From the NCBI RefSeq assembly GCF_963853765.1, contig NC_088854.1:38812001-38876000 (forward strand): a stretch of 64,000 nt of DNA, read 5' to 3'. Position numbers and translations under genes: made by a program. The stretch is from Magallana gigas (lineage: Eukaryota). Of this stretch, positions 12,954 through 53,934 are shown in pieces (positions within the stretch are counted from its first letter, which is position 1; every line of letters starts with the position of its first letter). Under the pieces are notes generated by a model, which saw only the letters and a program-made list of their open reading frames with translations, did no database searches and had not been told where the DNA came from.

Positions 12954-13719
12954 ATGGAAATCCTACTTTTAGCCGTGGGGGTAACCCTGGGTATGTATGA
13001 TACTTGTAACCAATAGGACTGTGGATCATCGTTAATTGACGGAACTTTTTAAAATTGTATTAAAAAATTATCGCCCCACCCATTTATTTTCGCCTTTTCG
13101 CCATCGGGCCAGTTAAAAATTAAAAAAAAATATCTTTAAAATACGACGTTCATAAGAAATAATAAATATTTCTGACTAGGTCTGGAGAAATCCAAGAATG
13201 GGTGAAATTATTTGCAAATGTCAAAGGGCGAAAAAAGCACATGGTGAAAATAACCATGTAATGCTACTATACAATATATATGAATCTTAATTGCGAATTT
13301 TTTCACAATCAAGATTTTTAAATTGCTGTACCTCCTTCAATTTTATTTTTAATTTTTATGAAGATTACACATTTCACGTCAAACGTCTGACTATAGTTTC
13401 GTGTTACAAATTATACACAGCTCGAATAAATATATTTACCCATCGCAAAATGGTCGTGTGATTCTATTCTTTACATAATGAACACTAATACCGATATCAA
13501 TACCTTGATCTGTAATTTTGCAGAAGAGAAGTAATTCAGAAATCTCTGAACATATAAAAATTAAACTTTTTAGTGATATTAAAAAATCTTGTACATCAAT
13601 TACATGTAATGTGTGTTTTGTTTTTATAAAGTATTGCAATTTTGTGCAAAGGAAAAAAATGAGATGGATAAGTTGAATACAGACTGGACAAATTGGACCC
13701 TTGTTATTTACTCGCACTA

Positions 13720-13778
<59 letters not shown>

Positions 13779-16730
13779 AAAATGTTTTCTAATACGTAAT
13801 TTGTTTTTCTCTTAGTAAGCGTTCATTACATGTGTATGTATGCAATTTGGATGCAATTGATTCATTGCACTGTTTAGCATACATTGTACTTTGTATCCTT
13901 AAAAATTTGTAATGTATGCAGAAGCAATTGGCTCATGAATATTTCTGTATCAAAAAATTTGAATTGAAAAAAAAACATGTGTGTTGCAATTCATCATGTA
14001 CATAATCTTCTTCAATTTCAAACTAACAATTAAAAAAAAAATTCTCTCAGTGATAGCCCAGGACCCTTGTCTACCCGCTTACCACCGTTTGATCAGTGAG
14101 CCCCACAGAAGCATCCAGTTCCAACCGGAACCAACGGATAAACTCCAATGTGACAACGGATTACCATCCGGATGGTACGTGTTCGACAATAATGACGAGA
14201 TGCCGACCTCATGCGTGACCCAGTATCACTGTGGGACCCACTACCCACTGTGGATGCAAGGCACAAACCCCTCCAAGGCCGATGGTATTGTTCGGAGAAA
14301 GGCCTGTTCCAATATCCATGGAAGCGCAAGCCAAACTTGCTGCGACTTTTCAATAGACATTCAGGTGAAAAACTGTGGTACTTTTTACGTCTATTACCTT
14401 CAAACTGTTCCGGGGTGTGCCATGGCCTACTGCGCAGGTAGGTATATTTCTGTAAATAAGTATCTTTTATAAAGCAGTATTCTCTCGAACTTGACCTTGT
14501 TTAATGTATCATATTTACATTTTCCGGTGTCTTTTTGATCTTGCTAAGAATCAAATTTTTGTAACGTATTGTCGAATACATTTTATTAATGACGAAAATG
14601 ACGTACATGTACATGTGTCGCAATCAAGGTTTGCATCATCAAACCAAATGAAAATAACGTTAAAATGTCAATAATTACATTTTTAATTGAACAATTGGTA
14701 AAAATCATATAATATAACTAAAAGGAAATCATTCTTTGAATATCATTAGCTGATCAAATACGGTCGGGCACGATCAAATCCATCATAAACCCATCAGGCT
14801 TAATTTTATCACCACCGACCGAATTTGATCACATCATAATACTCAAAGAATGATTCCTTATTTTTTAAATGGTTTCTTTGTTTTACAGGAAACAAAAAGG
14901 TTTGCAACGTAGGAGGTCAAATAGCTGTAGGTGGAAATTGTCCTGGTATGATTTTTTTTTACTTTTGTTACAAATACTTTTTAACTAATTCATAAATCGA
15001 TCAAAAAGTACGGACTATTTAAAAAGGTATTCTTCATTATTAGACCTCTACCCAAAGTTGACAAGTATGCCGGTTTTGCAAAAGCCAGAGGTCACTCCAA
15101 CCAAGGAAGTTCGATTTCCGTGTAGAATCGACTACCCTATTGGCCAACCTGATGTTGCATTTACTGTCACGTGGACAGTGGATGGCCATGAACTTCTCGA
15201 CCCAACAACAAAGACCCCTGTAAAAACGGTCTTGGTTGGGGACTCCAGAATTGCGTATTTAGACGCCATGAAGCTTAAATATAACCTTGGGAAAGAGGTA
15301 AAATTTAATTTTGACGATAAAATTTAATACTCTTTATTCTTATATTTATATAAATATATAATCTCTGTAAAACCTTCAGTTAATTAATTACTTTTTTTCT
15401 ACACCAGCTTAAGTGCAATGTATCCTCATACCATCCATCAAAAGGTCCAGGCATTAGCAGTGACACTCTAAGCAGTAATGGTTACTGGTGTGGAATTAAG
15501 GTATAATGATTTTGTACAACTGTTGTTGTCTTTGTTGTTTTTGTTGTATCGTTTCCTTAATATGAAACTGTTGTATCATTATTTTATCAATGTTGCATTA
15601 CTACAAAAATTATTGGCACAGGCGTCTGGTTCCAGGTATCACTGTTGTAGTTTTTGTTGTATCGTTGCCTTGATATGAAACTGTTGTATTACTGTTGTAT
15701 CAATGTTGTATATATCGTTGCGTTACTACAAAAATTATTGGCACAAGCGTCTGGTTCCAGGTATCACAAGACAGAATAAACGTGGATGAAGGAGGTCCGG
15801 AGAAGACGGTGAAAGTCGAGTCCACCATACCCATTCCTTGTACTAGTATTTTTCAAGACAGCTGTAAACTGACTGTGGTCCTAAAAGGGCTTCAACATCC
15901 GACGGGTAAGACCATATCATGTCAATTTTTTCATAAAAAATTATAAATACCTTTTTTTTCTCTCTTACTTAAATTGTATATTTGTCTTTTTAAAGTTATA
16001 CAGTACCTATGTTGATCAAGATACTGTAACAGTTGATAATGGAATACTAGTAATAAAATCACTATTCTTTTTTGGCAAACTCCCAGATTCTAAAAAAAGT
16101 AGAAAAATAGATAGTGCATAATTCTTTAATGCAAAAGATCTAGAACATAAAATTCTTAAAAATTATACTGAAGTCAAAATTTCACGCCGCTAAATTTTCT
16201 TCATGGACTGCAAAGTAAATTAAGAAGAAAATGAAGAGGGGTATGAAAAATCATGTTGTCTTCAAACAATCTCTAAATAAAATGATAAAGTGATTTTTTT
16301 TATGGAAATTATATTTTCAAATTCACTCGTATGAAAACAGCAACTCACTCAGTAGAATGGTTTCAGCGAAATTTGGGGGGGGGGGGGGGTAATTACAAAT
16401 GAACAAATACATTAAAGTTACCCAATACAGTAAGCGTAACTGTTTTAGTGATATTCGTTGACGGGTCTTTTTTTTTTTATAAAGATGCCGTTATGTCGGG
16501 TTGTCACCTTGACCTGAAATTGGACAACGTAACCGGTATGTATTCAACCTATCTGAAGATCAAAGCAACAAGGGATTTTATCAAAGACAACAACCAAGTA
16601 CATCAACTAGGGTTTCAACCTTTGCCCGGTTTTCCACACGCCATGTGGGAGAATTACACAATGACACCAATAACAGTGCGTAGATACTATTATATGCACA
16701 TTAATATGATAAATACCAAAATGCAAAATG

Positions 16731-16788
<58 letters not shown>

Positions 16789-19428
16789 CGTATGGAATTT
16801 TCCATTGATTCGTTTCTGTATTTTCCATCCCTTTCTTGTTTCTCTAAAGTTGTTAGAAGAAGCATATTTACCTTGAGAAATACATTGATTTGAATTTTTA
16901 TTATGGCTTAGTCTATCGAGATTTGTTATTAATAACCTTTAGAGCCCATAGGTTAAATAGCAGGCTGCACCTCCATTTGTAGTTCTCATTTTTTGGTACT
17001 TGTAATTCTTATTTAAATGATTTGCAGCATGGTTCATTTTGGTTTAATTTAGTTAAATAGGCCAAAGAGATCAATACACTATGTCACGGAAAGCTTCATA
17101 GAAATTTTACATTTTCATACCTTAGATTGGAACAACGGATAAAGAACACGGCAGTTGTAATCCATGGGGAGACCCTCACTTCAGAGGCTTCGATTTAAAA
17201 AAGTAAGTTTTCTACTCTAAGTACCACCATACTTTTGTAGTAGAAAATTAGCAATTAGCATATGCAGTGTACTATGAAAATATATGGCTGGACCATGAAT
17301 AGAACCCCAGACTCCGTTTTAGTTACCTGAAGGAGCTCTGGGGCTGAGCTACACAGGCTAGCATTAATGATCCATAAGGCCCCAACTATAATTGCACTTT
17401 ATAACGGTAAGATATAGAACATACTGTAATAAGAAGATTCTTTCTGAAGCTTAAAACCAAAATTGAATCGACATAGGGCCTTACATATCAACAAAGGCCT
17501 ACATGTATCAATACCAGTCATGTTACTGAACAATTAAAAAAAAGGCTTAATAACGCTAAAATAGCGTAATAACACATGAAAAAGGGCGTTAGAACGCCTG
17601 TTTAAAAAAGTAGTTGAAATGTAATAAAAAATTAAGTAAAAGTATTTGCATAACATAAGTTGCAGAATTAATCAAAATTGTAAAAATTTGTTATCAGTTG
17701 GTTCTGATCTAGTAGGGGCTTATTGTGATGTACTGCAAAGAATAAATGTGATAAAAGAGAAATGCAATATTAAAACAAAGGTACATTAAAACATTTCAAC
17801 TTGCAAGAAAAGGAACTTGGTGACTCAAGATTGCTGGATTGGTTAGTATAGTGAACACCTAGGTCTTTTGGACATGGCAACCAAACAGTGTAATCTAATG
17901 GATATATCCCTGTATTTAAAGATGTACGTCATTTAAATTTAAACGATTCTCTGACTCAGATTACGTGTTTCAAATGCCAATAGCACTCTATTGTTAAGTT
18001 ATAAGTGCATTAACATAACTTCCGGTTTGTGATAACATAACGTTGTAAGTTGTTTTATTTAAATAGGGTTGGGGAAATTCTTTCGAAGTCTTTTTCTGTC
18101 GATAAGGCTTTGATATTAAAGCATGTTCAGTGTCATTTTTTGGGGTTTTTTTATTCTGTCCTGTCTTTGCATGAATGTGAGAGTGAATGAATGTGTGTGA
18201 GCTAATGAGTGTGTATATGTTTGTCTTTGTCTCTTCATGTTCTGTTCATTGATTAATAAAATGTGAAAAAAGTTATACGCGTGCATTAGTATTTAGCATT
18301 TACAAAGTTAATCACTTAATCCTTTACATAACTTATAAATATATATCTAACATATCTTAACAATACATGCATACCTTGGTATGGGTCAGTATTGTTTGTC
18401 CCTTATCTGAGAACGTCCTTATATAACGTTTTATGCTAAAGATGGTAAAGACCTAGTAAGTTGTCAGAACTTGTGTCCAAACTATTTGTATATGTATCTT
18501 ATATATATGTATACAATAAAATAGGTTCAAATCAACGTTTTATTTACATGTGAAACTGTGTTTTGCATCCTTAGTTTGAGAAACTAACTGATAATTTGGG
18601 AATTTTTTTCGAAGTAATCACATATCAGGGAGGAAAACATTTTAGCAGACGACCTGTTTTAATGATAATTGGGAGTTCAAAAACAGAAAATAGTCTATCA
18701 TAAAATCAGATTTCAATATGTTCTTCAAATGTAACATCGACCCGTTTGCAACAAGAAAGCAAAAAAATGACATGTCATTATCATGTGATGTATATTTATC
18801 AAGATGATATTAATTTGATATTATTACATTTTCACAGAAATTACAACGTCTACGAAATAGGAGATTTTACTCTTTACAAGTCTCAAAACCAAAAGAGACC
18901 ATTTGAGGTATCTTCAGTATACTAGTATATTATATTAATTTTGAAATTTTTTCATGTCCTTTAGCTTATCTTAAAAACAAATACTTAATGTTTAAGTGAA
19001 TATATTTTGAAAGGTTCAAGTACGTACATGGCCATGTGGAAGCCTTCACCCGTGTATCTGTGCAGTCATTGCACGGGAAGGAAATGACGTAGTGGAGGTT
19101 GACCAGTGCGAAAAAAGAGCTGGCGTTGTAGAGGCTCCATCTGTTTCGTTTCCAACCGGGCATCCTCTGGAAGGAACAACTGTTAGCCGGGATAACAAAA
19201 CTGGGAAAATATTTAGCGTGTGTAACAATTTTGATTATTTGCAGAAATGATACAAGAAATTTATGTTCGTAATTGTCCGATTCGAATATTTGATTACAGT
19301 CATGAAAATTTCAGGTAGGGCTATTCTCTGCAGAAAAATCTCTTTTCTCAATGCCAGGAATCAAAATCACTCGAAAAATACGCGAATCCCAATCTTCCCT
19401 TCATAACAGAAAAGTTAAACAAAAGACA

Positions 19429-19495
<67 letters not shown>

Positions 19496-22400
19496 CCTTT
19501 TTTTTATATCTGTGGAATCATTAAAATTCGTGATAGCTCAATTTTCGTGGTATTCGTGTGTAGCCCTTCCCCACGAATTTACATCCTCAACGAAAACAAA
19601 TTTTGAAAGAGTTGGTTATCTTACCAATGCTAAAAACTGACAAATCCACGAAATGACATCCCCACGAATAAGCAAAAATCCCACAATCCACGAAAATTGA
19701 CCCCCACAAATTTAAATGATTCCACAGTATCTGAACTAAGTACTGAGTCTTGATTGGAAATATATTCAGATTAACTTTCCATCTGGAACTCGAATTCAAG
19801 TAAAGACCGGAATATCAAAGGGACGCCATGGAAAAGAGCATCTCCCATACATGAATGTGGATGTTCAAGCCCCACCCGATGACCATAACGCAGCGGAGGG
19901 ACTGTGTGGAAACTGGAATGGGGCAGAGGTGGATGCTCTCAGGGGCGGGGATGGCCACCTTTACACTCCGACCACCGTGACCGAATTCACCAAGAGTTGG
20001 CAGTATGTGTTTTTCTCACATTCAATTCAAAGAAAGAAAGGTTTCTTGCAATTTGTCTTTTACTTTGTTTTTACATCTTTGGTATTTCAGATAATCTAAT
20101 CACTGGGTTGTTAAACTATTTTTGACACAGACTTCCATCGGGCACTAGTATGTTTTACCAACTGCCGAAGTATGAACAACATTTAGCGCCAAAATTCGAA
20201 TATTGCTCGTGTAATCAGGGTCCAGTAGAGTGCACAAAAGCTGGAAACGGCGCCCTTAATCCAAGCAAAGTAAGTAAATGTTCTGTTTTTCTGTTCTTGC
20301 ATGTGTAGACTAACAAGTGATTTTACCTCATAACCTGAAATGTTTTAACAAAGAGACGTGATTAGTTTATTTTTTTAATGACTCTGTTAAACCAAAAATT
20401 CAAAGAAAGAAATTGTTAGCTTATTGATTATTTGTATTACCAGCAATCAGACGGCACTCCTATAAGTGACAAGAATAAGCCACACAGAAGGTCTGTGCGA
20501 TCCTACACCGACCATTACCCTGATCGACATCTCTCTTTCGACCCAAAGATGATCGCAAGTATGCTACGGATATATCCATCACCAGAATAAGAAAGATATA
20601 TAGATTAGAAGTTTGACTTCTTTGCGAGCTTCTCCTTTCGTCCTTTCTTCTTGTTTTTGATTTTTCTTTGGATTGGTTAATAAAATGAGTTTGCATGTAT
20701 ATAAACAGGAAGGCTAAAAAGAAACGTGGGTGCTACATTCCCAACTCCAAGTGGAATTACAGAAAGTCGGGCAAGGGACTACTGCAGACATACGTTCATG
20801 TCGGCATCTCTTTACAGCAAATGTCAACATTCCAACATACTGGCTGAGATCATTGATGGGTGTGTCGAAGATATCAAGGTAAAAAACAGGATGAATATTG
20901 TTGCATCTTTCATTCTGCAATTGGCTACAGGTTAAATCATCTTTTTAGCGTTTCAAAGTAAATGTAATTATTTTGAACAATACTGACAGGTTATCATAGT
21001 CTTTCTGTGTCTCTTTTATTTTAGTACTCAGATTCAGTCGACGCGTTCAAACTGTCTGCTATGAATGCATATGACAGTATATGTTATAATGAGTTGGCTC
21101 AGGATCCTAAGAACATTCATTATGTCAATGGTGTACCTATGGTGAGCCCCTCGATATCCGGTTGTCCAAACCAGTGCTCTCTAACCGGAAATTGCGTCAG
21201 CGGCGTATGTCATTGTCACCGTGGATACACCTCTGGAGATTGTTCTGTTCAAATTGGAGTTGCACCTAAGATATATCGTTTAAGAGGGTAAGCAAATGTC
21301 TGAGTAGCTAGTCCTTAAACCGTGAAACAGTTCACTTCAGTTCTTGATCTCGCTCTTACCAGTTGATAATAAACGTGTTGATGTTAATGTAATTTCTCGA
21401 ACCATATACATGTAGCATACGGTATTTCATATCCATTTTTGGCAATTTCAAGTTAATATTTTCTATATAAGGGTTTTTTTTATTCTTTCATTATTTTAAA
21501 CTGCATTGAATCTTCCTTTTAGAGACGGTCTCTGTGACATCAGAACTAGGCCTTGCAGACAAGCTAACGTCATCGTTGACAACATCGTAGAATCGGACAC
21601 TCTATCTTGTAGAATCACGCCAGTTGATGTATGAATGAACATTTCTACAGTTTCTTTTATCTTTGTTATCTCGAATTAAAGTACACAAAAGATCGGTTCA
21701 TTAAACCAGTATTTTATATAATTTAATTTTTCTATTATTAAAATTAGCTGTCAAATGGCCAACCAGTAGAGTCAGGGCCAGCGGTAAAAACTAAAGGGGA
21801 ATTTCTTAGCTTTTTAGAGGTGCAATGCCCAATTCCCGAAAGCAATGTAATGAAAGGTAAATAAGTAGAAAAGACACATATTATATATTTTCCAAGATAA
21901 CCAATACTGAGTTTTTCTTTTAAAAAGTGTTAGATTTTGAAAACACTTTTTTTTCTTAGGTCTAAGTGCCAAGGGTTTTAAAATCTCTATAACATCAGAT
22001 GGTCAACTTTACAGCCAGGAGGCGTTGTTCATTGTGGCTGATGGATACTGTACCAAGTGTACGGCTGCCGGAGTCTGTACTCACAATGTTAGTCAACTTA
22101 TCTAAATTGTTAGAAATATAATTAGCATGTGTAATACCACTTTAAAATTTAACAGTCAATAAAAGAAATTGCTTTTGATTAATTAAAAAGGTTAAAAACT
22201 AAATTTTATTGAAACTTTTGAAGAAAAGTTTATTTTCTCTTTAAATTTTGTTGATTTTAATTCAGAAGTCAGATTTCTTAGAATTGAGAGTTTTATGTGA
22301 TTATCTTTTAAAAGCCCGATAGCTGTTTCATTGACGGCATGTGTTACCGGAATGGCGACCAGGACAGCAAAGGTCAGGTGTGCGATCCTTCTGTCTCCAC

Positions 22401-22989
22401 TGTTGATTGGACGTACAGCAAGACCGTGCAAGGTAAGATTTGCAATAAACATCTTTATCCCATCTATTAAAATTTGTTTACTTGCTCTGGTTTTTGACAA
22501 ATTAGACGTGGCTGAAGCATCAGTTTGGGCGAAAAAATGTCAGAGAATTTTATTTACGTAATACGTTTTATTTATTCATCTATTTATTTTCATATATGTT
22601 AATGTGTAACAAGGTATCTGTGATAATTTACCACCTTCCTGTATAAAATCAGAAATGATTGGACATGTGCAAGTTTACAAAATTGTGTCGAAAAAGGCTA
22701 AGTATCATTATACAAAACAATTCCTCATGATCAACATCATTCTTTTAGAGTTAAAGGCCTTCACCAATAAAAAAAATACTCTCATTTGTTTGATTTTGCA
22801 GAGATAGACCATTACACCGCAACTTTCACGGGATGTCGATGTCCGTACAACACTAATCTCTTCGACTGCGCATGTTGTCAAAATGGCGGATGTCAGTGCG
22901 GGGAGATTCAGGCCAATCAATGTACAAATTGTAACAACAAGGCGCTGTGTGGCTCTAATCCGGGTCTCTTCCCACCGCCAACTCAGTAG
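12954..22989 (+). CDS. VWDE-like secreted protein, copy A (signal-D8C/D10C-VWD-EGF-Cys-rich tail), 20 exons, about 1027 aa, intact
   Basis: Exons: 12954-12990, 14051-14437, 14889-14945, 15044-15297, 15408-15500, 15761-15905, 16485-16675, 17126-17202, 18838-18907, 19014-19217, 19770-20002, 20131-20269, 20444-20558, 20709-20878, 21025-21287, 21523-21628, 21748-21856, 21960-22087, 22315-22432, 22802-22989. All GT-AG and phase-consistent (3084 nt). Signal MEILLLAVGVTLVIA; 10-Cys D8C (GWYVF...CGTHYPLWM); VWD CNPWGDPHFRGFD and GLCGNWNG; EGF CPNQCSLTGNCVSGVCHCHRGYTSGDC. Confidence 0.9.
13726..13774. repeat. (CT)n microsatellite
   Basis: Pure CT run in intron 1 of copy A. Confidence 0.95.
14722..14860. 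mobile_element. Palindromic repeat (aaggaaatcattctttga...tcaaagaatgattcctt), degenerate copy
   Basis: Same family as 24481-24628, 34786-34890 and 55131-55260. Confidence 0.65.
16735..16786. repeat. (GA)n microsatellite
   Basis: Pure GA run in intron 7 of copy A. Confidence 0.95.
19431..19491. repeat. (AT)n microsatellite
   Basis: Pure AT run in intron 10 of copy A. Confidence 0.95.
19507..19729. mobile_element. MITE related to family 2
   Basis: Ends ...ctgtggaatcattaaa / tttaaatgattccacagta; internal ccacgaa motifs. Confidence 0.7.
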
Positions 22990-23052
22990 TCGCGCGATCA
23001 CTAAAACAGTACAATAATTAGGAAAAAGTTCCAGATAACTGCTCATTAGAAG

Positions 23053-23058
23053 AATAAA
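23053..23058 (+). terminator. Candidate polyadenylation signal of copy A
   Basis: AATAAA about 64 nt after the stop codon. Confidence 0.45.
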
Positions 23059-23421
23059 AAATGAAAATTTACCCGTCCCATTTTATTTTCTTATGAATAT
23101 TTGAATAAATTAGTCAATTATTATTTGTTTCTTTTTTCATATTGATTCTTTCAAGAATAAGGGAGGAATGAAGAATATATACATCTTGATACTAAATTGA
23201 GCTATTTATAACAAGATGTGTGTGGATCCAGAATGTAAAATAAAAATAAGTATACCGTCCAATTTAGTACATGTATATGTATATATGTAAATTATCTTCA
23301 AATACAAGACTATCAAGACTAAGACGCACCGATCCCAACAAAATACATTAACATGTTTTTGAACCCGGTCGGATATTTATGTACTTAAAAATTACCAGAA
23401 ACTGGAAAACACAGTGTGCTA

Positions 23422-23980
23422 TATTCTGTCACAAGATATTTAAGCAGCACAATTGGAAGATATTTAATGAAAATAAACCTACATGTACAGTACTGATCAG
23501 ACCAAGCCAAACACCAGGGTAAACCCTAACCTAAACCACGGGTTTACATGTACTTTCGGGGTTTACTTGCGGTTAACTCTGAGATTACTTTTTGCTATTG
23601 GGGTCCTCTTTTAACATTGAAATGTGAAGCAGACCCGTCTATCATCTAATTATTGCCTGTAATTTCCACCCCTTGTGTATTCCAAATACATATGTAGCGT
23701 CTGCCTGAGGGATCTACATGTATTTCTGATTGGGATTTACTCTCTGGATTTAATTTAACTTTTGGTTTACTCTGGGTCTGCTCTAGTAAACCTAGAGTAA
23801 ACCCAAAGTAAACCCAGGGTTTACTCTGGCTTAACTTTCTGTTAGGTTGTGTCTGATCGATTCTGTACCTGTGAAAGAAATGCAATTGAAATTGACGAAA
23901 GGGAAAATATCCAAGATAATTTCATTCACAAACTATCATTTTTTACTCGAAAAAGATCACAGGAGCGAAAAAGAATCCAA
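23422..23980 (+). mobile_element. Truncated family-1 MITE carrying a nested 378-bp TIR element (23488-23865)
   Basis: The outer element matches 40973-41419 and 44443-44907. The inner element has ends cagtactgatcagac / gtctgatcgattctg and a TA duplication at the outer element's cata|cctgtgaa site. Confidence 0.75.
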
Positions 23981-40409: not shown

Positions 40410-40410
<1 letters not shown>

Positions 40411-40459: not shown

Positions 40460-40463
<4 letters not shown>

Positions 40464-40972: not shown

Positions 40973-41419
40973 TAGTCTGTCCCAAGATATTTAAGCAGCA
41001 TATTTTTACGATTTTTGATAAAAATATACATACCCGTGAAAAAAGTTCAATTGAAATAGACGAAAGGGAAAATTTCGAATATAATTTCATTCACACATTC
41101 ACATCATGATAATTCACTCGGAAAGGTTCTCAGGAACGAAAACAGATTTCTTTCGGAGATTTATAATGGATATGTTTACATCTTTTCTCCATTCGGAAGT
41201 CACTCGAATTACCTAGCTCAACTTTTCAACGTTATCAGCTGGGTCTGTTGCTATGCAACATTTCTGTAAACATCACATTTTTAGCCATGTATTGAAACAT
41301 GGAAAGCTAGAGGGGGCGTTTCAAAGAGGAAATCTTAGAAAATCTTCATACTTTAAAATAAACTTCGTTTAACACGAGGTATTTATAAATACAAGTATAA
41401 AATATCTTGGGACAGAGTA
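40973..41419 (+). mobile_element. Family-1 MITE, full length, TA TSD
   Basis: TA|tagtctgtcccaagatatt...aatatcttgggacagagta|TA; absent from the homologous 110-bp intron 4 of copy A. Confidence 0.88.
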
Positions 41420-41774
41420 TAAATCTTGTAAGTTCTAAAACTGCTCAATTACATGATGATTACAGCTTAAGTGCAATGTATCCACATACCATCCATCAAA
41501 AGGCCCAGGCATTAGCAGTGACACTCTAAGCAGTAATGGTTACTGGTGTGGGATTAAGGTAAGACGATTTTGTATCACAATTTTATCACTGATGTATCAA
41601 TTTCGTATCGCTATTGTATCACTGTTGATGCATCACTGTTTAGTGTTCTTATCGCTGTTGTACCTCTGTTCAGTGTGTTATTGTTGTATCACTACTCTAC
41701 CATTGTAGTATCACTGTTCTATCGATATTGTATTAGCATTGTTTCGCCTTTTATCACTGTTTTACGCCACATTA

Positions 41775-42652
41775 TCTATACTACTATATTAAAATAATAG
41801 ACTCGAATTTTTGGCCTTTAATACCGATAAATCGGAAGAGAACTGACTTTTTTTATATATATACATGAATATTTTAAACATCATTAGTACTTGAAGATTA
41901 CCAATTTGTTTTTATTTATTTTTTTCAATCAAGCTTCGCTAATCAATAAACATTCGTCAAAAATTCCGGAAATCATCTGGATTTTTAGGATTTTACGATC
42001 TTGTGCATGCGCGTTTCATTCACACTAAATCACAGGAGGCTCTTTAGTTAATGTTTTCACAGTATCACATTTGCATGGATAATCTCAGAAACGATTATAC
42101 AAAGATGTGTAAATTTTCATTGGAAATTTACTATATATATTCTGTGCATCAAAGAAAATAAGTGATATAACTCTTACACAGTGCATTTACTATGAAAAAA
42201 TCCCGAGAGTTCCGAATGTCAACATGGTGTGTAAATTCGAAGCGAGTGAAAAACGTTGGTGAGAAGTGTTGAATTTTTCAATGATAAGAATTAAATACTT
42301 AATTATGATAGGTATTTACAGCCTCAAAATGGTGGTTATGAATAATTTGACTGTTATTTTCAATGCAACTTCATTACTTTTCTCCAAAATCGTTTTGGAA
42401 CGATTCTGCAATTTTGTGTTACATTACGGGTATATGGGAGGCATTTTAACCGTGGTGAAGGTATGTCCCGATACACATTTAGATTATTCTTACTACTCGT
42501 AAGCAGAGTGTAGAGAAGTTGATAGCAATATTGTAGGCTAAAAGCTTGGTTATGTAAATTTCAACTATACGGTGTGTCGATGTATCATCTATTTCGTTAG
42601 TGTCCGATATCATATGCAATGTAAACTCGTGCACGCACGGGTAAAAGTCTAG
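41775..42652 (+). mobile_element. Non-autonomous Helitron (878 bp)
   Basis: 5' TC (tctatactactatattaaaa), 3' hairpin actcgtgc-ac-gcacgggt then CTAG; inserted between A and T with no TSD, about 35 nt upstream of the exon-6 acceptor of copy C. Confidence 0.85.
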
Positions 42653-44442
42653 TCAATAAAATCATGGCACAAGCGTATGTTTCCAGGTATCACAAGACAG
42701 AATAAACGTGGATGAAGGAGGCCCGGAGAAGACGGTGAAAGTCGAGTCCACCATACCCATTCCTTGTACTAGTGTTTTTCAAGACGATTGTAAACTGACT
42801 GTGGTCCTAAAAGGGCTTAAAAATCCGGCGGGTAAGACCATACAATGCCTTGTTTTATCATAACATTTAAAATATGTTTTGCACAACCTTTTTTTGTCTA
42901 GTCATCACATTCTTGTCACGTGTCAAAGTATAATTGTTTTAATAAAGATGGTAGAAGAAGAATATTTGCGTTGGAGATTTTTTTGTTTGCAAAAAAATTG
43001 TTCGAAAAAATACGTAATGTATAGTGAATAAATCTTTATACGCAAGAAAACTTTGATAACTCGCTTAAGTAAATATTGAAGTCGCAACATTTCACACGGC
43101 TAAAACATTGACTAATTCTTTGAAAGATGAAAACAACAGATATACGACGAACTCAACAAAACTTTCTATACTATTCTCAAATGAACAATTACTGCTACAT
43201 GTACATTACCGTTAACAGTTCTTGTCTGTTTTTATAGTGTAACTATTTTAGTTGTCTTCGTTCACCTGTCTGTTTTATAAAGATGCCGTTATGTCGGGTT
43301 GTCACCTTGATCTGAAATTGAACAACGTTACCGGGATGTATTCAACCTATTTAACAGTCAAAGCAACAAGGGATTTCGTCAAAGACAACAACCACACACA
43401 CCAACTAGGATTCCAACCCTTACCCGGTTTTCCACACGCCATGTGGGAGAATTACACAATTTCGCCAATAACAGTACGTACAATGTAGATACTATAATCA
43501 TTTAATATTTATTAGTTTGATAAGATATCGGCGCTTCTGATTGGTCAAAAATTTCTTTGATACCTGCATCAATAAAATTTTGGTCGGGTCTACTTTTCTC
43601 ATCTGATCTGTTCTTATTTAACAGTATTTATAGAACGGAAATTTCCAAAATAAACACTGTAAACAAAGTGTAAAGTTGTGTCTGTTTAATTGTCAGCAAA
43701 CAAAATACAACTTTATACATATAGAAAATTAAAATTTTAACCTACGAATATAAAAAATACATACATTTAATTCACTAAATAGAAAATTAAGCGTCTTCCA
43801 CTATTTCGTCTGCTTGAGATTAATCAACATTTACTGCGAGGCTGGCTGTTCCTTTTCCAGTAATAATTTTAACGAACATATAGGCCTATACACTTTCACG
43901 GTAACACTGCTGTTCAAATTTGAAATGATGATTTTTAAATATACACACGTACATCACCCCTGCGAATGTGTTCGGAATGTTATCTTTATTGTTGCTAAGA
44001 CTGTAATAAATCCAGAGGTGCTCAAATGAAAGTTCACCAGACTTTCCCGAGATTTGTTCAGTTCCTGTGAAATTTCGAGCGGAAGTATAAGTGTTCGGAA
44101 AATATTCTTAAAATACTTATTATAAGTACTGGTCGTTTTTCATATCATATCCTACTTTGATTTATGTTAAAAATGAAAATCTATGAAGATATATGTCTTA
44201 TTTTATCATCTAGTGCTTATTTAAATTAAACGATGATATTCAGAACAGAGTTATCGTTCGTGTTCAACTACTCAACACGTGGTTGAAAATGTAAACATTG
44301 GGTTACTTAATAAAATCATAGCCATGTTTGATACTTTTGGTGTGCAATACCATGCATTTTAAAAATTGAACGGGTGTCTGTTTTGTATAGAAACTTAGTA
44401 TATCGAGCCATCTTCAAAAAACATTCTGCATAAAACAGTATA

Positions 44443-44907
44443 TAGTCTGTCCCAAGATATTTATGCAGCACATTTGGACAATTTTTACTAAAAATACACA
44501 TACCTGTGAAAGAAGTGCAATTGAAATAGTTGAAAGGGATATTTTCCAAGATAATTTCATTGACACATTATCATCTTTCACTCGAAAAAAGTCACAGGAA
44601 CGAAAACAGATTCCTTACGGAGATTTATAATGGGGAATGTTTGCATCTTTTCTCCATTCGGAATACACTCAGAATACATCGCGTAATTTTTCAACGTTAC
44701 CATCCGGGCCTGCTGCAATACAAAATACCCGTAGACATCACATTTTTTAGCATTGTATTGAAACCTGATAAGCTAACAGGGGCGTTTCGACTGAGAAATT
44801 TTGGAAACTTTTCATACTTTTGAATGAACATCGTTTGAACCCTGAGGTATTTATAAATATCAAGCAATTAAGCCAAATGTGAATCCAGGATATCTTGGGA
44901 CAGAGTA
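44443..44907 (+). mobile_element. Family-1 MITE, full length, TA TSD
   Basis: TA|tagtctgtcccaagatat...atatcttgggacagagta|TA. Confidence 0.88.
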
Positions 44908-47900
44908 TAGTCTGTTTCACTATTGATGCTATTACTACATGTAGGTCAGGCGCGGATCAAAAAAATAATCCTTAGGGGTGATCGCCACTAAGCATGTTAA
45001 TTGTTGTAACAGCGGGGAAAAACTGATGTTTTCTATTTCTAGAACTCATGTTATCCACCAATTAATAAAGATAAAGTTTAAAACCAATAAACATCTAGGT
45101 TTTATATTTGACTGCAAGTGCCTAACATTTTAGAAAATAGACTATAAACACCAGGCACGTTTTTTACTACGAAACTAAAAGGTTAAAAATAAAATCACGT
45201 AGTCTTAATTTAAATGACAATAATATTCGCAGGGGTGTACATGATCGGTCATCAGAATAAGCATCGTAAAACAAAGCTGAGCAGTGCATCAACTCCTTCA
45301 GCGCATTCCAAGCGGCAGATATACCATTCGAGTACATTGCTGGCTATCTAGTTACCACAACGTTTTCAAAAGTCGCTTATACATACTATTCTTTGTCGAC
45401 ATATCAACTATTTTCGTCCACGATCGCCTCTCCTTGCATGGGTATGCCCGGTTGCCCAGAAAACCAGTTTTAACTAATATGTCTGCACAGTGAATAATAT
45501 CACAAAATATCGCATGTATTTTCCTTTCGTTTTCAATTCAGCATTATTTACAGATTTTAACTCACTACTGTGTTTAATCCATTAGATTCAGCTCAATAGC
45601 TCTGCATCAGCTGAAGGCGCATCCATTTTGAATACTGTTGCTGTCATACGCGCCGCTTCATTTACATTATTTACATTTTTCATCAATGACACTTCACAAT
45701 TTATGATTCGAAAATGTTTTATTAAATTATAAGAAATGAAGATAAATAGCTCATTGATGAAAAAGTTTTCCGGTCAATTTTTTCTTTGATACGTCGATCA
45801 ATAGAAAAATTATTATCTTCATTTCTTAATTCATCTCAAAATCCGATGTTGCAAATGTATATGATTATGAGTTCTGATTTTATTTACATTATGTAATAAC
45901 AGGTTGAGCACAGTTCTCTTATAAAGAAATGATTACGCTAAACGTGAACTTTACCTCTTTTCAGTAGGCTCATAAAAATATTCCTGCAAATTCGGAATTT
46001 TGATATGTTTTCATTCACATCTTGTTATCTTTAACATATTTTTGAAATATCAAACACCCACTTACTAAATGTATGCTTCAAATTTTGATATTTACAGCTG
46101 TATTTCAGTGAAATCCAGTAACAACTTAAATCTATTCAAGAGATTTCTTACGATAGCCTCTTCAATATAATAACGTACGTTATAGTTATATTAAAATTTT
46201 AATATGATATTAAAATCAGAGATTTCTAAACCAAACTATACCAATCTGGTTATAAATTCATTTATCAGTTGCTCTGAGAACATAAGTTCTCAGGTTCATA
46301 AACAAAATATTAATCCCATTGACATTAGTCTTTAATATCTACTTTACTTAATCTCCCTACAAATGAATATATTGGTAGACAATAGAAGTTTGAAACTAAT
46401 GTAACAGCTATATGTGTAAATGCTGATGTTTCTGGTATATCATTACCAACTCTGTTGTATCGAAAAAGTCATGCCTGTATAAATGAAAATGTAAAAAAAA
46501 AAATAGCTAAGACCTCGAAGAGTACGGTTGGGAAACTTAAAACAATCCAAAAGATGTGAGCTTTTCAACCAAATTAAACCAAACCGGAAAGGTTGTGATA
46601 TTTAGCAAAAGTCAACATCTTGGTTGGCAACCTGGGATCAAGGGCAATGCATTGTTCTTAAAAATTTGAAAGTTAAGTGGAAATCAGTCACCCTGACGGC
46701 AAGACAATTAAATACATGTATGCTTATTTCATACTGGAAATACATTACACTAGGTGAACACTAAGAAGTTTTCTTGAGTGTACATAAAGAAAATTCCGCA
46801 TCTGCGGGAGTGTTTTATTACTGAAAAGTGGATTGGTTCCCGTTTAGCGTAATCATTCCTCTACAAACAAAGTAACTGTGCCCAACCTGTAATATGAAGT
46901 AAGGAGATCAGTACACTGTATCACTGAAAGCTGTAACGAATTCATACCTTAGATTATAACAACAGATAAAGAACATGGCAGCTGTAACCCATGGGGAGAT
47001 CCTCACTTTACAGGCTTCGATTTGAAAAAGTAAGTATTGTATTCTATGATGTCATCATACTTGCATAGTAGGAACTGAGGAATTATCATATATACTATGA
47101 ATAAATATATAAAATCAAATGGTGAGAAAAAATAAAGTATGTCCTTTAATTTTGATGACACTTGAAAAAAATCTGAAAATTTCTAAAAATAATTTTTCAA
47201 AAATTAAGAATTTCTGTGTGATTTTTTTTACGCAACTTTTACGCAACATAACAAAGCTTTTGTGGTATATAATAAAAATTTAGATATATTTTTACAAGTT
47301 CCAACTAAAACAATTGCACAAAAAATCAAAAGCGGGAATTAAAGCTTTTTAAAATCAGCTTTAATTTCTCAGCTTTTCCTATTTTTTTTGGCCTTGTTGC
47401 CATAGCAACGGATGTCAATTTTCATAATAAAGTTCATATAGCATGGACATTGATATTGATGTAAAAAATTTAACAGTTTCCCATTTTGGCTTATTAAAAA
47501 ACCGCAAAAAACTGATTTCGAAAATTTGTAACGGTTTCCATGGTAACATTTTAAAAGTATTGGTTTCTCCATCAGTTTTCTGATAAAATTAGATAATTGA
47601 AAATAGGACAAAGGCTGTTTTATGTCTTTGATTGTTAACATTAGTGGACAAAACCTTCTAATGTGGCTTCAAAGTAGGTAAGTTTTGCTATTTTTTCATC
47701 TTTAGGTCGATTACTATGGCAACGGTTACCCTTAGCAACCTACTTTTAGTGTTTTTTTGCGTTTTACACCTAGGTGTGTCCATGTATGAAATATAAGGAA
47801 AATTGTTGATTATGCGTGGCCAGACCCTTCGTATAAATTTTTGATTCTTACATAAAATCTTTAAAAGGACCAATAAAAACCATTTTAACAATTCTTTTTT

Positions 47901-49126
47901 TAACGTATTACATTTTTCTTACAGAAATTACAATGTCTATGAAATAGGAGACTTTATTCTCTACAAGTCTCTAAACCAAAAGAGACCATTTGAGGTAACT
48001 CTCGATATAACATACTGATATTATTTTTTACACTTTTCTCTTTCTTTTTGTTAATAAGCAAATAATGAATGTTGCAATGTATAAATTTAACAGGTTCAAG
48101 TTCGTACGGGGCCATGTGGAGGCGTTCAGCCGTGTATCTGTGCAGTCATTGCACGCGAAGGAAATGACGTAGTGGAGGTTGATCTGTGCGAAAAAAGACC
48201 TGGCGTTGTAGAGGCTCCTTCTGTTTCGTTTCCAACCGGGCATCCATTGGAGGGAACTACTGTTAGCCGGGATAACAAAGCTGGGAAAATATTCTACGTA
48301 TGCCATGTTTTTTTTATTATTATTAGAAATTATTTTAAACAAATATTTATCAAATTCAGATACAGTCATATATCTTCAATAGAGTGGTTATCATTGCAGC
48401 AATCTTCAATAGAGTGGTTTTCATTGCAGCAATTCTTATTTCTTTTTGCGAGGAATCAAAATCATCGTAAAAAATACATGTACAATGTACATGTATTCCG
48501 TTTTTAATTATAAAAGGAACGTCACGTATGTTGATATTTGCGTTTGGCACTTTTACCTCATTAGGCGTAAACTATTTTTAGATCAACTTTCCCTCTGGAA
48601 CTAGAATTCAAGTTAAAACTGGAATAGCACACATGGACTTGGATGTCCAAGCCCCACCGGATGACTTTAAGGCAGCTGAGGGACTATGTGGAAACTGGAA
48701 TGGTGTTGAGGGGGGTGCCCTGAGGGGCGGGGATGGCCACCTTTACACACTGACCACCGTGACTAACTTCACCAAGAGTTGGCAGTATGGGTTTTTTGCA
48801 TAAACAATTTCAAGAATTTTTTTATTTATCTGGGTTTTTTTTCACATCTCTGCTCTAAATAATAGTATTATTGGGTTGTAAAGCTATTTTTGTCACAGAC
48901 TTCCAACGGGCACCAGTATGTTTTACCAACTGCCGAAATACGAACAACATTTAGCGCCAAAATTTGAATACTGTTCCTGTAATCAGGGTCCAGTTCAGTG
49001 CACAAAAGCTGGAAACGGTGCCCTCAATCCAAACAAAGTGAGGAAATGTGTTACACTATTTATTTTATGGTCTTACACAAAGGGATTAATAATAGATTCA
49101 TAGTAATAAAGACCGAGTATATGGTC

Positions 49127-49756
49127 TTAAGGACGTTGGATCCTGCGATCAAAAGTCTCTAAGTTTTTTTCTTAAGTATTTTTTAAATATCTACACACAT
49201 ATATAAACCAAAATTCAAAACAAAATTTTGGGATCTATATGCTCCTTTCGGTGCTACGGTGTATTTAATATGACCTTTCTGCACTGAGAATGCAAATTGC
49301 ACATAAATCGCTTTTCCCTCTATATTTTTTTCTCGAAATGAACCCTGGTATCAAATACAAATTTACATTATTTAGAATTAATAAAATTAAAATTATCATA
49401 ATGAAAAAGTTTGCAATTTTTTCACCTTATTGATATTTTGACCTTTATGCACTAAAAAAATACTATTTTTATTCATAAACGATTCAACATGCAATTAAAT
49501 AATTTAAAAGTCTCAAACTTTTTCTCAAATTATGACAGACTTGTCAAAAGAAACTTAAATATTCAGAAAATAAAACCAAAAGTATGGGTCTATAATGTAA
49601 ATTTTGAGATATGGCATGAAATAAGCTAATTTTAGGGGAAAATTGGAGTTGATTTTTTCTTTACTTTTATGAAATATCACATAAACATGCCAATATATGT
49701 CGATAGAAATATTAAAATATTGTTGAAATATGTTCTTTGAAACAATACGAAGATAT
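49127..49756. mobile_element. One-ended TTAA-GG transposon-like insert at the copy C deletion junction
   Basis: Begins ttaa|ggacgttggatcc; AT-rich noncoding body; no matching inverted end seen; abuts the middle of exon 15 (ggagattgttcc). Kolobok-like end is an inference. Confidence 0.5.
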
Positions 49757-51064
49757 GGAGATTGTTCCGTTCAAATTGGAGTTGCACCTAAGATATATCG
49801 TTTAAGAGGGTAAGCAAACATCCAAGAAGTCGGTCCTTAAATTGTGAAACAGTTCATTTTTTGATCTCGCTCTAAAGTTTATATGAAAAAGTCAGACTAA
49901 GTCAAAGGTAAAGTAGTCAACCCTAACTAGTAAAAGTGCCCATAAAGCCATTTCATGTAGCGTTTGGCGATACTATATAGCAATATTGTATTCAAATTGT
50001 TATGGTAATAAACGTTTAGATATAAGGTATTTTCTCCTATCATACCGGTATATTAGTAGGTATTTCATATCAGTTTTTGTTATTTCATGCCAATATTTTT
50101 TTTTACATATTTATATAGTCCGACCTTCATCGTTTCAGAGACGGATTCTGTGACATCAGAACTAGGCCCTGCAGACAAGCTAACGTCATCGTTGATAATA
50201 TCATGGAATCGGACGCTTTATCATGTAGAATCACTCCAATGAATGTATGAATGAACATTTCTACAATTTTGTTGTTTTCTCACTCAAGCTAAGGCTCACG
50301 ACCCAATGATTTATTAATCCAGTATTATATACTTGTATTCTTTTCCATGATTTAATATTAGGTATCAAATGGCGAACCGGTGGAATCAGGCCCAGCGGTG
50401 AACACTAAAGGGGAATTTCTTAGCTTTTTAGAGGTGCAGTGCCCAATTCCAGAAAGCAACGTTATGAAAGGTAGATACTTAAAAATAGCACTTATTAAAT
50501 ACATTTTTCTTGAAATTATCAATACTGGATTAACTGAAATTTTGAATTCATTATTTTTTAGGACCGAGTGCCAAGGGTTTTAAAATCTCCATAACCTCAG
50601 ATGGTCAACTTTACAGTCAGGAGGCGTTGTTTATTGTCGCTGATGGTTACTGTACCAAGTGTTCAGCTGATGGAGTCTGTACTGACAACGTTAGTAGTCT
50701 AAAGTGTTAGAAAACGCATTAGCATGTAGTAATACCATCAAAAACAGTCGATGGAAGTAATTGTTTATTATTATGAATGAAAATTACTGTTCTCATTTTT
50801 GGGAGTTGATTTTAATCAACTCTCCTATGCAATTACTCTGGCAAACCGAAAGCGAAACAGTGTTTGGACCTAAGCACAAATCACCACCGCTGACAAGACT
50901 TAGTTTTTGAAAATAATAGAAGATTTCGATGAAATGTATGCTGAAGCATTGTTTTTCAAGGAAACTTATCTATAAACACTTTGAAAATAGTCAGATTTTA
51001 TATAATATGAACAAGTTAGATATTTTTGTAGTCTCATGTACTCCTACGCATGAGTTTGATATAG

Positions 51065-51172
51065 TCTCGTTCAACCAAACGTTCGGCTGTCTCCGTAAAT
51101 CTCCGACAAGCAAAGAGGCTCTCTTGCTTGTCGGAGATTAACGGAGACAGCGAACGTCTGGTTGAACAAGAC
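51065..51172. repeat. Hairpin with about 50-bp arms inside an intron-18 insertion of copy C
   Basis: ...gctgtctccgtaaatctccgacaagcaa-agaggctct-cttgcttgtcggagattaacggagacagc... Confidence 0.75.
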
Positions 51173-52189
51173 AAGAGTTCGATTACAATAGTGCTTGGAT
51201 CCATACAATCTTTAGAATTGTTTCGATTACTGATATATAGTTTAAAATCCATCTTTAAATATTACACAACATGATTCCTATGGGGTTTCTCGAAATTCTT
51301 GTCTGAGAAGTCTAAAAATCCATATTATAAAAAGTGCGTAATTCAAATACAGACTAGAAACTAATTGCCATGCAAGATAAGTTGATTTTAATATAAATGA
51401 TAATCGATAAAATCAACTCCCGTCAGTACTTCAGTACTTTGATTTTCTAGAAACTTTTGAAGAAAAAGTCTATTTTATATTTTAGAATTCGTTGTTTTTT
51501 TAATTATAAAATATCATAGATATTAATGAGGTCAGATTTCCTAGATTTGAGATTTCAATTTGATTATTTTTCATAAGCCCAACACCTGTGTCATTGACGG
51601 CATGTGTTACCGGAATGGTGACCAGAATAACGAAGGACAGGTGTGCGATCCTGCTGTCTCTACTGTTAACTGGACATCTATCAAAACAGTGCAAGGTTAG
51701 ATTTTCAATATACATTTATCTTTATTCCATTTAAAAAAAACTTGCTCTGGGATTTGCCAAATTAAACATAAACGTTCCCTTATTAAATCTAGACCAAATA
51801 CTATACAACACAAATTGATATATATTTATATCATTAAAAAAACTTGCGTAAATATCAGGTACTAGTCTATATCGTTTTTTTTATTGTATCAATTGTTTAC
51901 TTACTGTTATTTCACTAAAAAGAGTTTTGCACTTAAAGCACATATGATATGCGCAATGACCTTGTATTTCTATTTACATGTATTTATTTATTCACTTATA
52001 CATTCATTCCTTCATTTATTTATTCCTTCATTTATTTATTTACTTTCATATATTAACGTTTCTGTAATTGATCAACTTCCAGGAAAACGTCCAAGATCGC
52101 TGTGTAAGTGCAAGTTTACAAAAGTAAAAACAAATACTAATAAGTATTATTATAAAACACAACTCCATGAAAATGCTCAAGGACATCGT

Positions 52190-52470
52190 TATTAGTCCCC
52201 TACCGGTTTTCACCTGAGGGGACTATAGCTTTCCTCTGCGTCCGTCCGTCTGTCTGTCCCACTTCAGTTTTCCACACTTTTTTTCTTTATGCGTTTGAGG
52301 AATAATATGAAATTTGCTGAACAGCTTCAAAATGTCAAGCTACAGATCAAATTTACACTTTTGTAGCGTCTGGTTGACATATTTTCGAGAAAATTAATTT
52401 TTTTATTCCAATTTTTTAATGTTCGGGTTCGTTATCGGGTTTGGTGTATTGGATAAAGGAGGAAAGTATG
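52190..52470 (-). mobile_element. Helentron-like terminal fragment
   Basis: tagtcccctaccgg...aggggactatag hairpin followed by a tccgtccgtctgtctgtc microsatellite. Confidence 0.5.
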
Positions 52471-52476
52471 TAGTTA

Positions 52477-52952
52477 AAGTTTGTCCCAAGTTATTGCTTC
52501 CATCGCTTTTTGATGATTTTTAATAAAATTACACATACATGTGAAAGAAATACGGTTGAAATCGTTAAAAGGGAATATATCCAAGATATCTTCATTGAAC
52601 AATTATCCCTTTCCACTCAGAAAAATTAACAGGAACGAAAACAGATTCCTTACGGAGATTTATAATGGGGAATGTTTACATCTTTTCTCCATTCGGAATA
52701 CACTCGGAATACATCGCGCAATTTTTTAACGTTATCATCCGGGCTTATTAATGGCTGTTGCAATGCAAAATCTCCGTAGACTTTCAATTTCGGGATGTGT
52801 ATTGAAACCTGAAGCTGTAGAGGGGGCATTTCAAAACAGATAATCTGGACATTTTTTATATCAGTGGATGAACGTAGTTTGAGCACAAAGGTATTTACTA
52901 TTATTGAAATATCATGCAAAAAGTGGTGGAAGCAAAAACTCGGGACAGAGTA
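52477..52952 (+). mobile_element. Family-1 MITE
   Basis: Ends ...ttgtcccaagttattgcttc / aaaaactcgggacagagta|TA; reverse complement of 6410-6884. Confidence 0.85.
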
Positions 52953-53934
52953 TAGTAATAATATCGTCAGACGTGCATTATTGGGACCATTCCTTTTATT
53001 GTTTCTAAAAAACAAATAAGTTCTGTAAAATAGTGTCAAACATTGTGTTTTAAATTTAATCGACAGGGTTTTTTGTATTATTACAATCGATTCGGGGAAC
53101 AGAAGACGGTAAGAAATTATATTCTGCATAACAGTGCATTGTTTTCACAATTTTCTACAAACCGGTAGGGGACGTGTATTGCTTATGCAATACTATCAGA
53201 ATGCTTGTTTTTAATATAAGGCCTTTGCCAATGAACAATAACTGACCGATATGTTTGACTTTGCAGAGATTGACCAATACACTGCAACTTACACCGGATG
53301 TCGATGCCCGGACAACACAAATTCTTTCAACTGCGCATGTTGTAAAAATGGTGGATGTCAGTGCGGGGAGATTCAGCCCAATCAATGTACACATTGTAAC
53401 TGCAAGAAGCTGTGTGGCTCTAAACCTTGTCTCTTTCCGCCGCTAGCTCCGTAGTCACGTGATCCATTAAAACAATCTACACTCAGAAAATGTTTCAGAG
53501 AATTGTTTATTTGAAGAAAAAACATAAATTGACCCGTCCCAATTAACTTCTTCGAAAATTTGAAATAAGTTGTTTGTTATTATTAAAGGAACGAAGATTC
53601 AGTGCATATCAATATTTAATCGAACTACTTGTAACAATAATTAGTTACAAATCAAGCATAATGCGTTTGTTGAACAAGAATGTTCCCAAACGGAGCCATG
53701 TGAATCCTGAATACAAATTACGCGAACCTAGCTGTGAGAAGTTGCGATTGTGTTTTCCCGAGCTCTGCGATTGTATCAGTTGTGATTAATTAAATCATAT
53801 CATAAATTCTAACATTTGGTAAAGTTTATACTTTCGCTTTTTCCGAGTTCTGTTGGAAGGGAACGAGAGGTTGTTATTGACAAGTTTCACTCTCTTTTTT
53901 ATTTCATTACGAACAGTATATTCATGGAATTGCA

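Follow-up and report, generated by a model that had tools for sequence, protein, structure and literature searches.

VWDE-like paralogues in tandem in the Pacific oyster: an old intact pair and a broken third copy

The presence of three VWDE-like genes side by side in the genome of the Pacific oyster, Magallana gigas, raises the question of how far their products depart from vertebrate VWDE, how the copies arose and whether all of them are intact. The genes, referred to here as A, B and C, lie on the + strand at 12954-53454 of a 64,000-nucleotide window (RefSeq assembly GCF_963853765.1, contig NC_088854.1, forward-strand positions 38,812,001 to 38,876,000), position 12954 being the ATG of A and 53454 the final stop-codon base of C; all positions given below are those of the window. 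An initial annotation, made from the sequence alone, delimited the three paralogues correctly and described them as a lineage-specific, diversifying family with a non-standard C-terminal half. We consider it highly probable that they form a compact, head-to-tail array of three VWDE-family paralogues, of which A and B are intact and C is broken in the present assembly.

Three collinear sets of Cys-rich + strand open reading frames (ORFs) provided the starting material for the gene models, in which splice sites were picked by a phase-aware donor/acceptor scan. Gene A (12954-22989, +) has 20 exons and an intact ORF of 1027 aa. Its exons 1-10 lie at 12954-12990, 14051-14437, 14889-14945, 15044-15297, 15408-15500, 15761-15905, 16485-16675, 17126-17202, 18838-18907 and 19014-19217, and exons 11-20 at 19770-20002, 20131-20269, 20444-20558, 20709-20878, 21025-21287, 21523-21628, 21748-21856, 21960-22087, 22315-22432 and 22802-22989 (all +). 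Gene B (24269-36569, +) likewise has 20 exons and an intact ORF, of 1036 aa, with intron phases identical to those of A. Its exons 1-10 lie at 24269-24314, 26846-27241, 27396-27452, 27842-28086, 29087-29179, 29342-29492, 29937-30130, 30457-30533, 30679-30748 and 30848-31048, and exons 11-20 at 31233-31474, 31691-31829, 31967-32081, 32554-32723, 33084-33346, 33731-33836, 33967-34075, 34611-34738, 36163-36280 and 36379-36569 (all +). In BLASTP and cluster look-up, the A model matches P0171 (XP_065932544.1) at 100% identity along its 1027 aa, and the B model P0197 (XP_034300138.2), likewise at 100% identity. Since the translations match RefSeq proteins in full, the two models are right and the genes are already annotated; the names given to them by NCBI are already VWDE(-like). 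The exon and phase layout, originally thought to be common to all three copies, is indeed shared by A and B and extends only in part to C, whose break (see below) had not been flagged. A and B are 69% identical overall at the protein level. Nothing in B or C matches exon 1 of A at the DNA level, and the phase-aware scan shows that B and C share a different first exon (MGTRxLPLLALSS). Gene A is transcribed: RNA-type runs from several studies contain 26-41% of the words of 20444-23200, a region in which the exon fraction is about 0.43.

Full-length relatives were gathered by a phmmer search with the D8C exon over the whole protein library, followed by further homology search. A family profile built from 20 sequences aligns to hamster VWDE with an E-value of 8e-90 over 868 columns (27% identity, hhalign), in agreement with the VWDE-like label of the initial annotation. 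The domain order originally read from A and B also holds, as judged from Pfam, profile comparison and AlphaFold2 (AF2) models: a signal peptide, a D10C/D8C domain, a putative Ig_VWDE domain, a second beta region, VWD, a basic linker, a C8-like module, one EGF, an IPT/TIG-like sandwich, a CFIDGxCY segment and a 10-Cys tail. The precomputed matches of P0153, which is 98% identical to A, and of all close relatives include PF26129 (Vwde).

It is in the C-terminal half that the proteins had been thought to be non-standard. Exon-by-exon Pfam scans of the C-terminal exons found nothing apart from the EGF. In the profile comparison (hhalign), hamster VWDE 885-1124 is matched by residues ~675-965 of A with a probability of 99.6% and an E-value of 3e-24, over a stretch which includes the beta-rich region and the motif CVIDGLCY...C.P..S...W. 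Two C-terminal segments, residues 668-811 and 805-1027, were then folded with AF2 from family alignments. The first, largely encoded by the rest of exon 14 and exon 15 (20731-21287, +), is modelled as four helices followed by the EGF, with a mean predicted local distance difference test score (pLDDT) of 87.6. Its best matches in AlphaFold DB are mouse Vwde 786-923 and human VWDE 785-927, with template modelling (TM) scores of 0.64-0.65. When compared with solved structures, the helical part fits the C8 modules of MUC2, MUC5B, MUC5AC, VWF and FCGBP (Z 5.0-5.8 over 74-80 residues, 15-20% identity), and these five proteins make up 9 of its 15 top rows. These modest but consistent scores suggest that the helical Cys module is C8-like. 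The single EGF of A and B gives EGF_TEN/EGF_Teneurin matches in Pfam.

Exons 16-19 of A (21523-22432, +) encode the beta-rich segment (exons 16-18) and the CFIDGxCY Cys-knot segment (exon 19). The model of residues 805-1027 has a pLDDT of 79, rising above 84 in the exon 16-19 part, and its best AlphaFold DB match is human VWDE 924-1092 (E 1.7e-13, TM 0.63, model residues 1-159). Foldseek matches of the beta sandwich in the PDB are the DBB/TIG domain of BCAP, NF-kB p50, the TIG domain of NFAT and the IPT domain of plexin A2 (E 2e-4 to 5e-3, target TM 0.5-0.64), and the IPT domains of MET and plexin are also among its AlphaFold DB matches. Because the PDB and AlphaFold DB matches are TIG/IPT domains, the segment is, as modelled, an IPT/TIG-like sandwich; the resemblance to TIG is one of fold only, with no Pfam TIG sequence match. 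Up to about residue 963 A is a standard VWDE, collinear with its vertebrate counterpart through CFIDGxCY. The description of the C-terminal half as non-standard does not stand: only the last ~62 residues, encoded by exon 20, depart from vertebrate VWDE.

Vertebrate and oyster proteins share, in the same order, D8C, a region that is putatively Ig_VWDE in the oyster, VWD, the linker, the helical C8-like module, the EGF, the IPT-like sandwich and CxIDGxCY. In the vertebrate protein an array of EGF repeats follows (hamster 1212-1597), whereas in oysters the C-terminus is formed by a 10-Cys module of 62 residues, which stands where vertebrates have the EGF array. Other differences are the TDPH of hamster VWDE where the oyster VWD domain has GDPH, and gene number, with one gene plus one paralogue in vertebrates and a tandem family in oysters.

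The terminal module, encoded in A by exon 20 (22802-22989, +), has the pattern C-x-C-x8-C-x-C-C-x4-C-x-C-x7-C-x2-C-x5-C. Its ten Cys residues are invariant across 19 bivalve modules from oyster, scallop and clam. The module is present twice in venerid clams and absent from the Pomacea, Branchiostoma and hamster relatives. It lacks an EGF signature, and A and B, with a single EGF further upstream, have no counterpart of the multiple-EGF C-terminal array of vertebrate VWDE. No relatives of the module were found in Pfam, Atlas or the PDB, and homology search returned oyster VWDE-like proteins only. Its model has low confidence (pLDDT 35-73). The one match, to the CXC domain of MSL2, is at chance level (E 5.2 in a PDB profile search and 0.57 in Pfam) and is taken as no more than a lead.

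In the N-terminal half, the signal peptide of A, as judged by eye, is MEILLLAVGVTLVIA, followed by QDPC at the predicted cleavage point, and is split across exons 1 and 2. Exon 2 (14051-14437, +) encodes the end of the signal peptide and the 10-Cys D8C/D10C domain, with a Pfam D8C_UMOD match of E 1.3e-15; on the full proteins D8C_UMOD (PF23283) scores E 4.9e-14 for A and 4.6e-17 for B. Exons 4-7 (15044-16675, +) encode the putative Ig_VWDE domain (exons 4-5) and the second beta region (exons 6-7), and constitute the block in which A and B diverge most. The Ig_VWDE E-values are 0.014 for A and 6.8e-6 for B and reach 9e-9 among relatives, and the region lines up with the Ig domain of hamster VWDE in hhalign. 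The VWD domain, with the motif WGDPHF at its first strand, is encoded by exons 8-12 (17126-20269, +) and passes the Pfam cut-off of 22.9 bits for PF00094 in both proteins (26.1 bits in A, 41.5 bits in B); GDPH is kept in all oyster A/B/D members. The basic linker, encoded by exon 13 and the start of exon 14 (20444-20730, +), carries RRSVR and RRLKR in A, of the furin type R-x-K/R-R, and KRLKR in B. In every oyster A/B-clade protein R-[LF]-[KR]-R-N stands 9 residues ahead of a conserved FPTxSGITE. Neither A nor B has a hydrophobic C-terminus and no copy in the array has a transmembrane segment.

Residue 273 of A (~15490, exon 5) is a Cys, in the GYWCGIK of A-clade proteins, where the B clade has Ala. 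It is owing to this extra residue, which B lacks, that mature A has an odd number of Cys (57). Judging from the sequences, it may be a free or intermolecular cysteine distinguishing A from B.

VWDE-like proteins from other bivalves (Ostrea edulis P0012/P0152, Saccostrea P0151/P0154, C. virginica P0155, scallop P0120/P0160/P0161 and clam P0166/P0163) have an identical architecture, including the 10-Cys module, at 40-82% identity. They differ in that those of venerid clams have two terminal modules, that of Mactra has a Thr/Pro-rich mucin-like linker, and a third copy (C) is seen in M. gigas data only. The D assemblies of mucins, VWF and FCGBP (VWD-C8-TIL-E) also have a VWD with a first-strand GDPH followed by a helical Cys-rich module, on which the oyster module superposes with modest scores. 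In contrast to these, oyster A and B have neither TIL nor E in Pfam, nor a mucin domain or CTCK, and an insertion of about 90 residues, the basic linker among them, separates VWD from the C8-like module. Uromodulin, GP2 and OIT3 share the N-terminal ten-Cys D8C/D10C domain; A and B differ from them in having no Pfam match to a ZP module, no glycosylphosphatidylinositol (GPI) anchor and no EGF repeats ahead of D8C.

When did the copies arise? The maximum likelihood tree contains bivalve sequences only, hamster VWDE being the sole vertebrate protein returned by the homology search. In it A falls together with a single protein each from Ostrea and Saccostrea (support 98/98), C being nested in the Magallana branch of A, and B falls with C. 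virginica, Ostrea and Saccostrea proteins (support 86/90). In O. edulis an A-like and then a B-like gene lie in tandem and in the same orientation, adjoining a RabGAP-TBC gene as in the window. Because the tree clades are common to other oyster genera and the tandem is found in O. edulis, the A/B duplication predates the oyster radiation and the pair is old and retained. C alone is a recent, Magallana-specific addition derived from A. The family had been called lineage-specific; this applies to C only, the A/B pair being common to Ostrea, Saccostrea and Crassostrea/Magallana. A fourth, more distant paralogue is found at C2:37501160-37507239 (minus), ~1.3 Mb from the window and with 35-61% identity by exon. 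Its counterpart is the P0202/P0058 clade, for which C. virginica and Saccostrea have separate orthologues.

The rates of nonsynonymous (dN) and synonymous (dS) substitution, obtained with our own Nei-Gojobori script, give no sign of the diversification which had been proposed. Between A and B dN is 0.22 and dS is saturated, for a dN/dS of about 0.05-0.1; between A and C dN is 0.071, dS 0.39 and dN/dS 0.18. A and B evolve under purifying, not diversifying, selection, the gene-wide dN/dS being about 0.05-0.18 over the A-B and A-C pairs. These values cannot be broken down by exon for A-B, where dS is saturated in most exons and exon-wise omega is unreliable. The remark that A and B are clearly divergent in exons 4-7 and yet both intact was accurate: identity there is 50-74%, against 69% overall, and is lowest in exons 5-7 (50-61%). 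Exon 2 lies at the other extreme (14051-14437 vs 26846-27241), with 87% nucleotide identity, no gaps and a dS of 0.65 vs saturated dS elsewhere, a pattern in the sequences which suggests A-B gene conversion at the D8C exon. Exons 18 and 20 have a weaker form of the same excess of similarity.

The third copy, C (38807-53454, +), keeps 17 exons (E1-E12 and E16-E20) and a remnant of E15. E1-E9 lie at 38807-38852, 39482-39867, 40520-40576, 40658-40911, 41466-41558, 42687-42831, 43283-43473, 46953-47029 and 47925-47994, E10-E12 at 48094-48297, 48582-48784 and 48899-49037, the E15 remnant at 49756-49809, and E16-E20 at 50139-50244, 50362-50470, 50562-50689, 51578-51695 and 53267-53454 (all +). E1-E12 and E16-E20 have A-like lengths, splice sites and frames and no internal stops. 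The promoter, exon 1 and intron 1 are B-like and the body is A-like, the switch being inside exon 2; from these similarities C appears to be a younger, A-derived and B-headed mosaic copy. Introns 7 (43474-46952) and 19 (51696-53266) of C measure 3.5 kb and 1.6 kb vs 0.45 kb and 0.37 kb in A, and their very high read depth in all runs indicates that they are filled with repeats.

Two lesions break the copy. A three-way DNA alignment reveals a 1-nt deletion in exon 2 (39856/39857, +) which, with A-type splicing, leads to a stop at 40553 in exon 3 (codon 156); C also has in-frame deletions of 9 nt in E2 and 30 nt in E11. Further downstream, 706 bp of unrelated DNA (49050-49755, +) have replaced E13 and E14 together with 209 nt at the 5' end of E15: collinearity between A and C stops at 20281/49049 and restarts at 21234/49756. 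Most of the replacement (49127-49755, 629 bp of the 706) is an AT-rich interspersed repeat, of which the genome contains at least 829 candidate copies. Identity is 94-97% for the 40 copies scored, so that the repeat must be a young one; it shows no clear terminal inverted repeats. In the conceptual mRNA translation, E12 and E16 of C join out of frame.

Intact relatives of C exist. P0179, of 1020 aa and from a 3.2-kb Logan contig, is 97-98% identical to C and shares its 3-aa and 10-aa deletions. P0176 (XP_034300141.1), from an older assembly, differs from C by up to 12% in the middle exons. Since intact versions are present in other oysters, C has the look of a null allele, and the simplest reading is that the third gene is polymorphic and that a null allele of it, with a frameshift and with three exons lost in association with a repeat, segregates in the species.

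What the intact proteins do can be approached from their sequences and by analogy. Our best guess is a secreted, possibly convertase-processed matrix or mucosal glycoprotein. The A and B products would be secreted, disulfide-rich glycoproteins without a membrane anchor. A furin-type convertase may cleave them at R-L-K-R, immediately ahead of the C8-like module; the two cleaved halves could perhaps be held together through VWD-C8 packing, as in D assemblies, and GD/PH autoproteolysis is possible. They might act at epithelial surfaces such as mantle and gill, as scaffold of a matrix or mucus layer or as adhesion proteins, and the analogy of the blastema-expressed vertebrate Vwde suggests a possible use in the repair of wounds or shell. 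The literature offers leads to such sites at the level of the name VWDE. In Mytilus a VWDE transcript ranks first among mantle-only transcripts (PMC4581086), a VWDE protein is up in scallop mantle infested by the shell-boring Polydora (PMC9641012), and in an oyster single-nucleus atlas VWDE genes cluster with shell-matrix genes and respond to ostreid herpesvirus 1 (OsHV-1) (bioRxiv 10.64898/2026.05.15.723513). VWDE-named genes also appear in oyster challenge lists (PMC9679248, PMC9892467). In vertebrates vwde is blastema-enriched and necessary for limb regeneration in the axolotl (PMC7390686). A link to planarian equinox was considered and set aside, its likeness to VWDE being confined to EGF repeats (PMC9117669).

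Several points weigh against the picture drawn so far. The signal peptide call was made by eye. The PF25776 Ig_VWDE matches of A (15.7 bits) and B (26.4 bits) are both under the Pfam cut-off of 28.1, which the close relatives P0058 (30.4 bits), P0156 (29.1 bits) and P0079 (35.6 bits) pass, and the structural comparisons behind the C8-like assignment score modestly (Z 5-5.8, Foldseek E > 0.6). In C, the 1-nt deletion seen in the assembly sequence could be an assembly error; the exon loss cannot. We infer the secretion, cleavage, tissue site and function of A and B from sequence features and analogy, and the papers cited above give VWDE by name only; oysters have many VWDE-like genes.

An alternative to the matrix or mucosal role, to which we give a small though not negligible chance, is that A and B are mainly soluble immune decoys or pattern-recognition molecules, with a D8C arm that, like that of uromodulin and GP2, presents glycans or binds microbes. 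Both proteins have the D8C_UMOD domain, VWDE-named oyster genes shift their expression after challenge with OsHV-1, Marteilia or Perkinsus (bioRxiv 10.64898/2026.05.15.723513, PMC9679248, PMC9892467), and the segregating null allele and strongly divergent alleles of the third copy form a pattern frequent in immune genes. However, A and B have no ZP polymerisation module, their D8C exons contain no N-glycosylation sequon and dN/dS carries no diversifying signal, while the expression reports are gene-name lists untied to the A, B or C loci.

The null allele reading of C also has to be set against the possibility that C still works, the 1-nt deletion being an assembly error and the transcript skipping from exon 12 to exon 17 to give a shorter protein. 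We regard this as quite improbable. E12 and E17 do join in frame, no stop interrupts the retained exons, their splice sites are intact, A-C dN/dS is 0.18, and C exons carry low-level strand-consistent RNA reads (depth 0.2-2, in the poly-A run X21), an RNA contig (X11) ending exactly at E19 (51578-51695). However, the linker, the C8-like module and the EGF would be missing from the skipped product together with the initial third of the IPT domain, and the skip would halve the IPT-like fold. RefSeq support at C is limited to a model for a 194-aa C-terminal fragment, P0170 (XP_065932545.1), which is 100% identical to E16-E20. In the reads over 48050-54000, where exon coverage is sparse and intronic repeats dominate, no exon-exon joints of C were seen, and hence no E12-E17 joint, though at very low depth. 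The allele from which the RNA reads come, broken or intact, cannot be told, and they could stem from intact alleles in other animals; a low dN/dS is in any case expected under recent inactivation.

That the three copies are merely haplotypes assembled side by side, an artefact to which highly heterozygous oyster genomes are prone and which the initial annotation had rightly thought unlikely, can be dismissed with near certainty: A-B protein identity is just 69% with saturated dS, A-C dS is 0.39 with different intron lengths, an older assembly carries three separate RefSeq genes, O. edulis has the same A-like/B-like tandem pair and A and B fall in clades common to other oyster genera.

Some features of the surrounding sequence are worth recording. 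The RabGAP-TBC gene upstream of the array is in synteny with that of O. edulis. At 9075-9223, upstream of gene A, 149 consecutive N represent an assembly gap or a mask. A long intronless open frame at 1599-3170 (+) has the look of a Cys-loop receptor, and a gene at 56083-63100 (-) carries Gly/Asn- and KP-rich repeats. (GA)n/(TC)n microsatellites occur in introns of all three copies (13727-13781, 16735-16800, 27456-27506, 40411-40466 and 36285-36327) and produce spurious tblastx and blastn cross-matches. A dispersed repeat of ~113 bp is present in the A-B spacer (23866-23978) and in three C introns (41031-41142, 44501-44614 and 52536-52649), with 76-85% identity.

A, B and C are already annotated members of a known and poorly studied family, and in this sense the finding is an ordinary one. 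The result is mostly corrective: the C-terminal half turns out not to be aberrant, the genes are under purifying selection and in the present assembly one copy is dead. Two modest new points are the bivalve-type terminal 10-Cys module and the natural null allele of the third copy. Very tentatively, the module could be an innovation of bivalves that took over the position of the EGF array, and perhaps a metal-cluster or disulfide-knot domain of a new type. The third paralogue would segregate in Pacific oysters in intact, strongly divergent and null forms, a presence/absence polymorphism which could underlie variation in repair or disease traits.

To our knowledge, limb regeneration in the axolotl is the one setting in which the function of VWDE has been put to the test. 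The whole VWDE core (D8C, a putative Ig domain, VWD, C8-like module, EGF, IPT and CxIDGxCY) is conserved between bivalves and vertebrates, which gives a domain map cleaner than the gene name implies. Oysters, which have both an ancient tandem pair and a third copy with a naturally occurring null allele, are a tractable system in which to study the role of VWDE at wounded or secreting epithelia.

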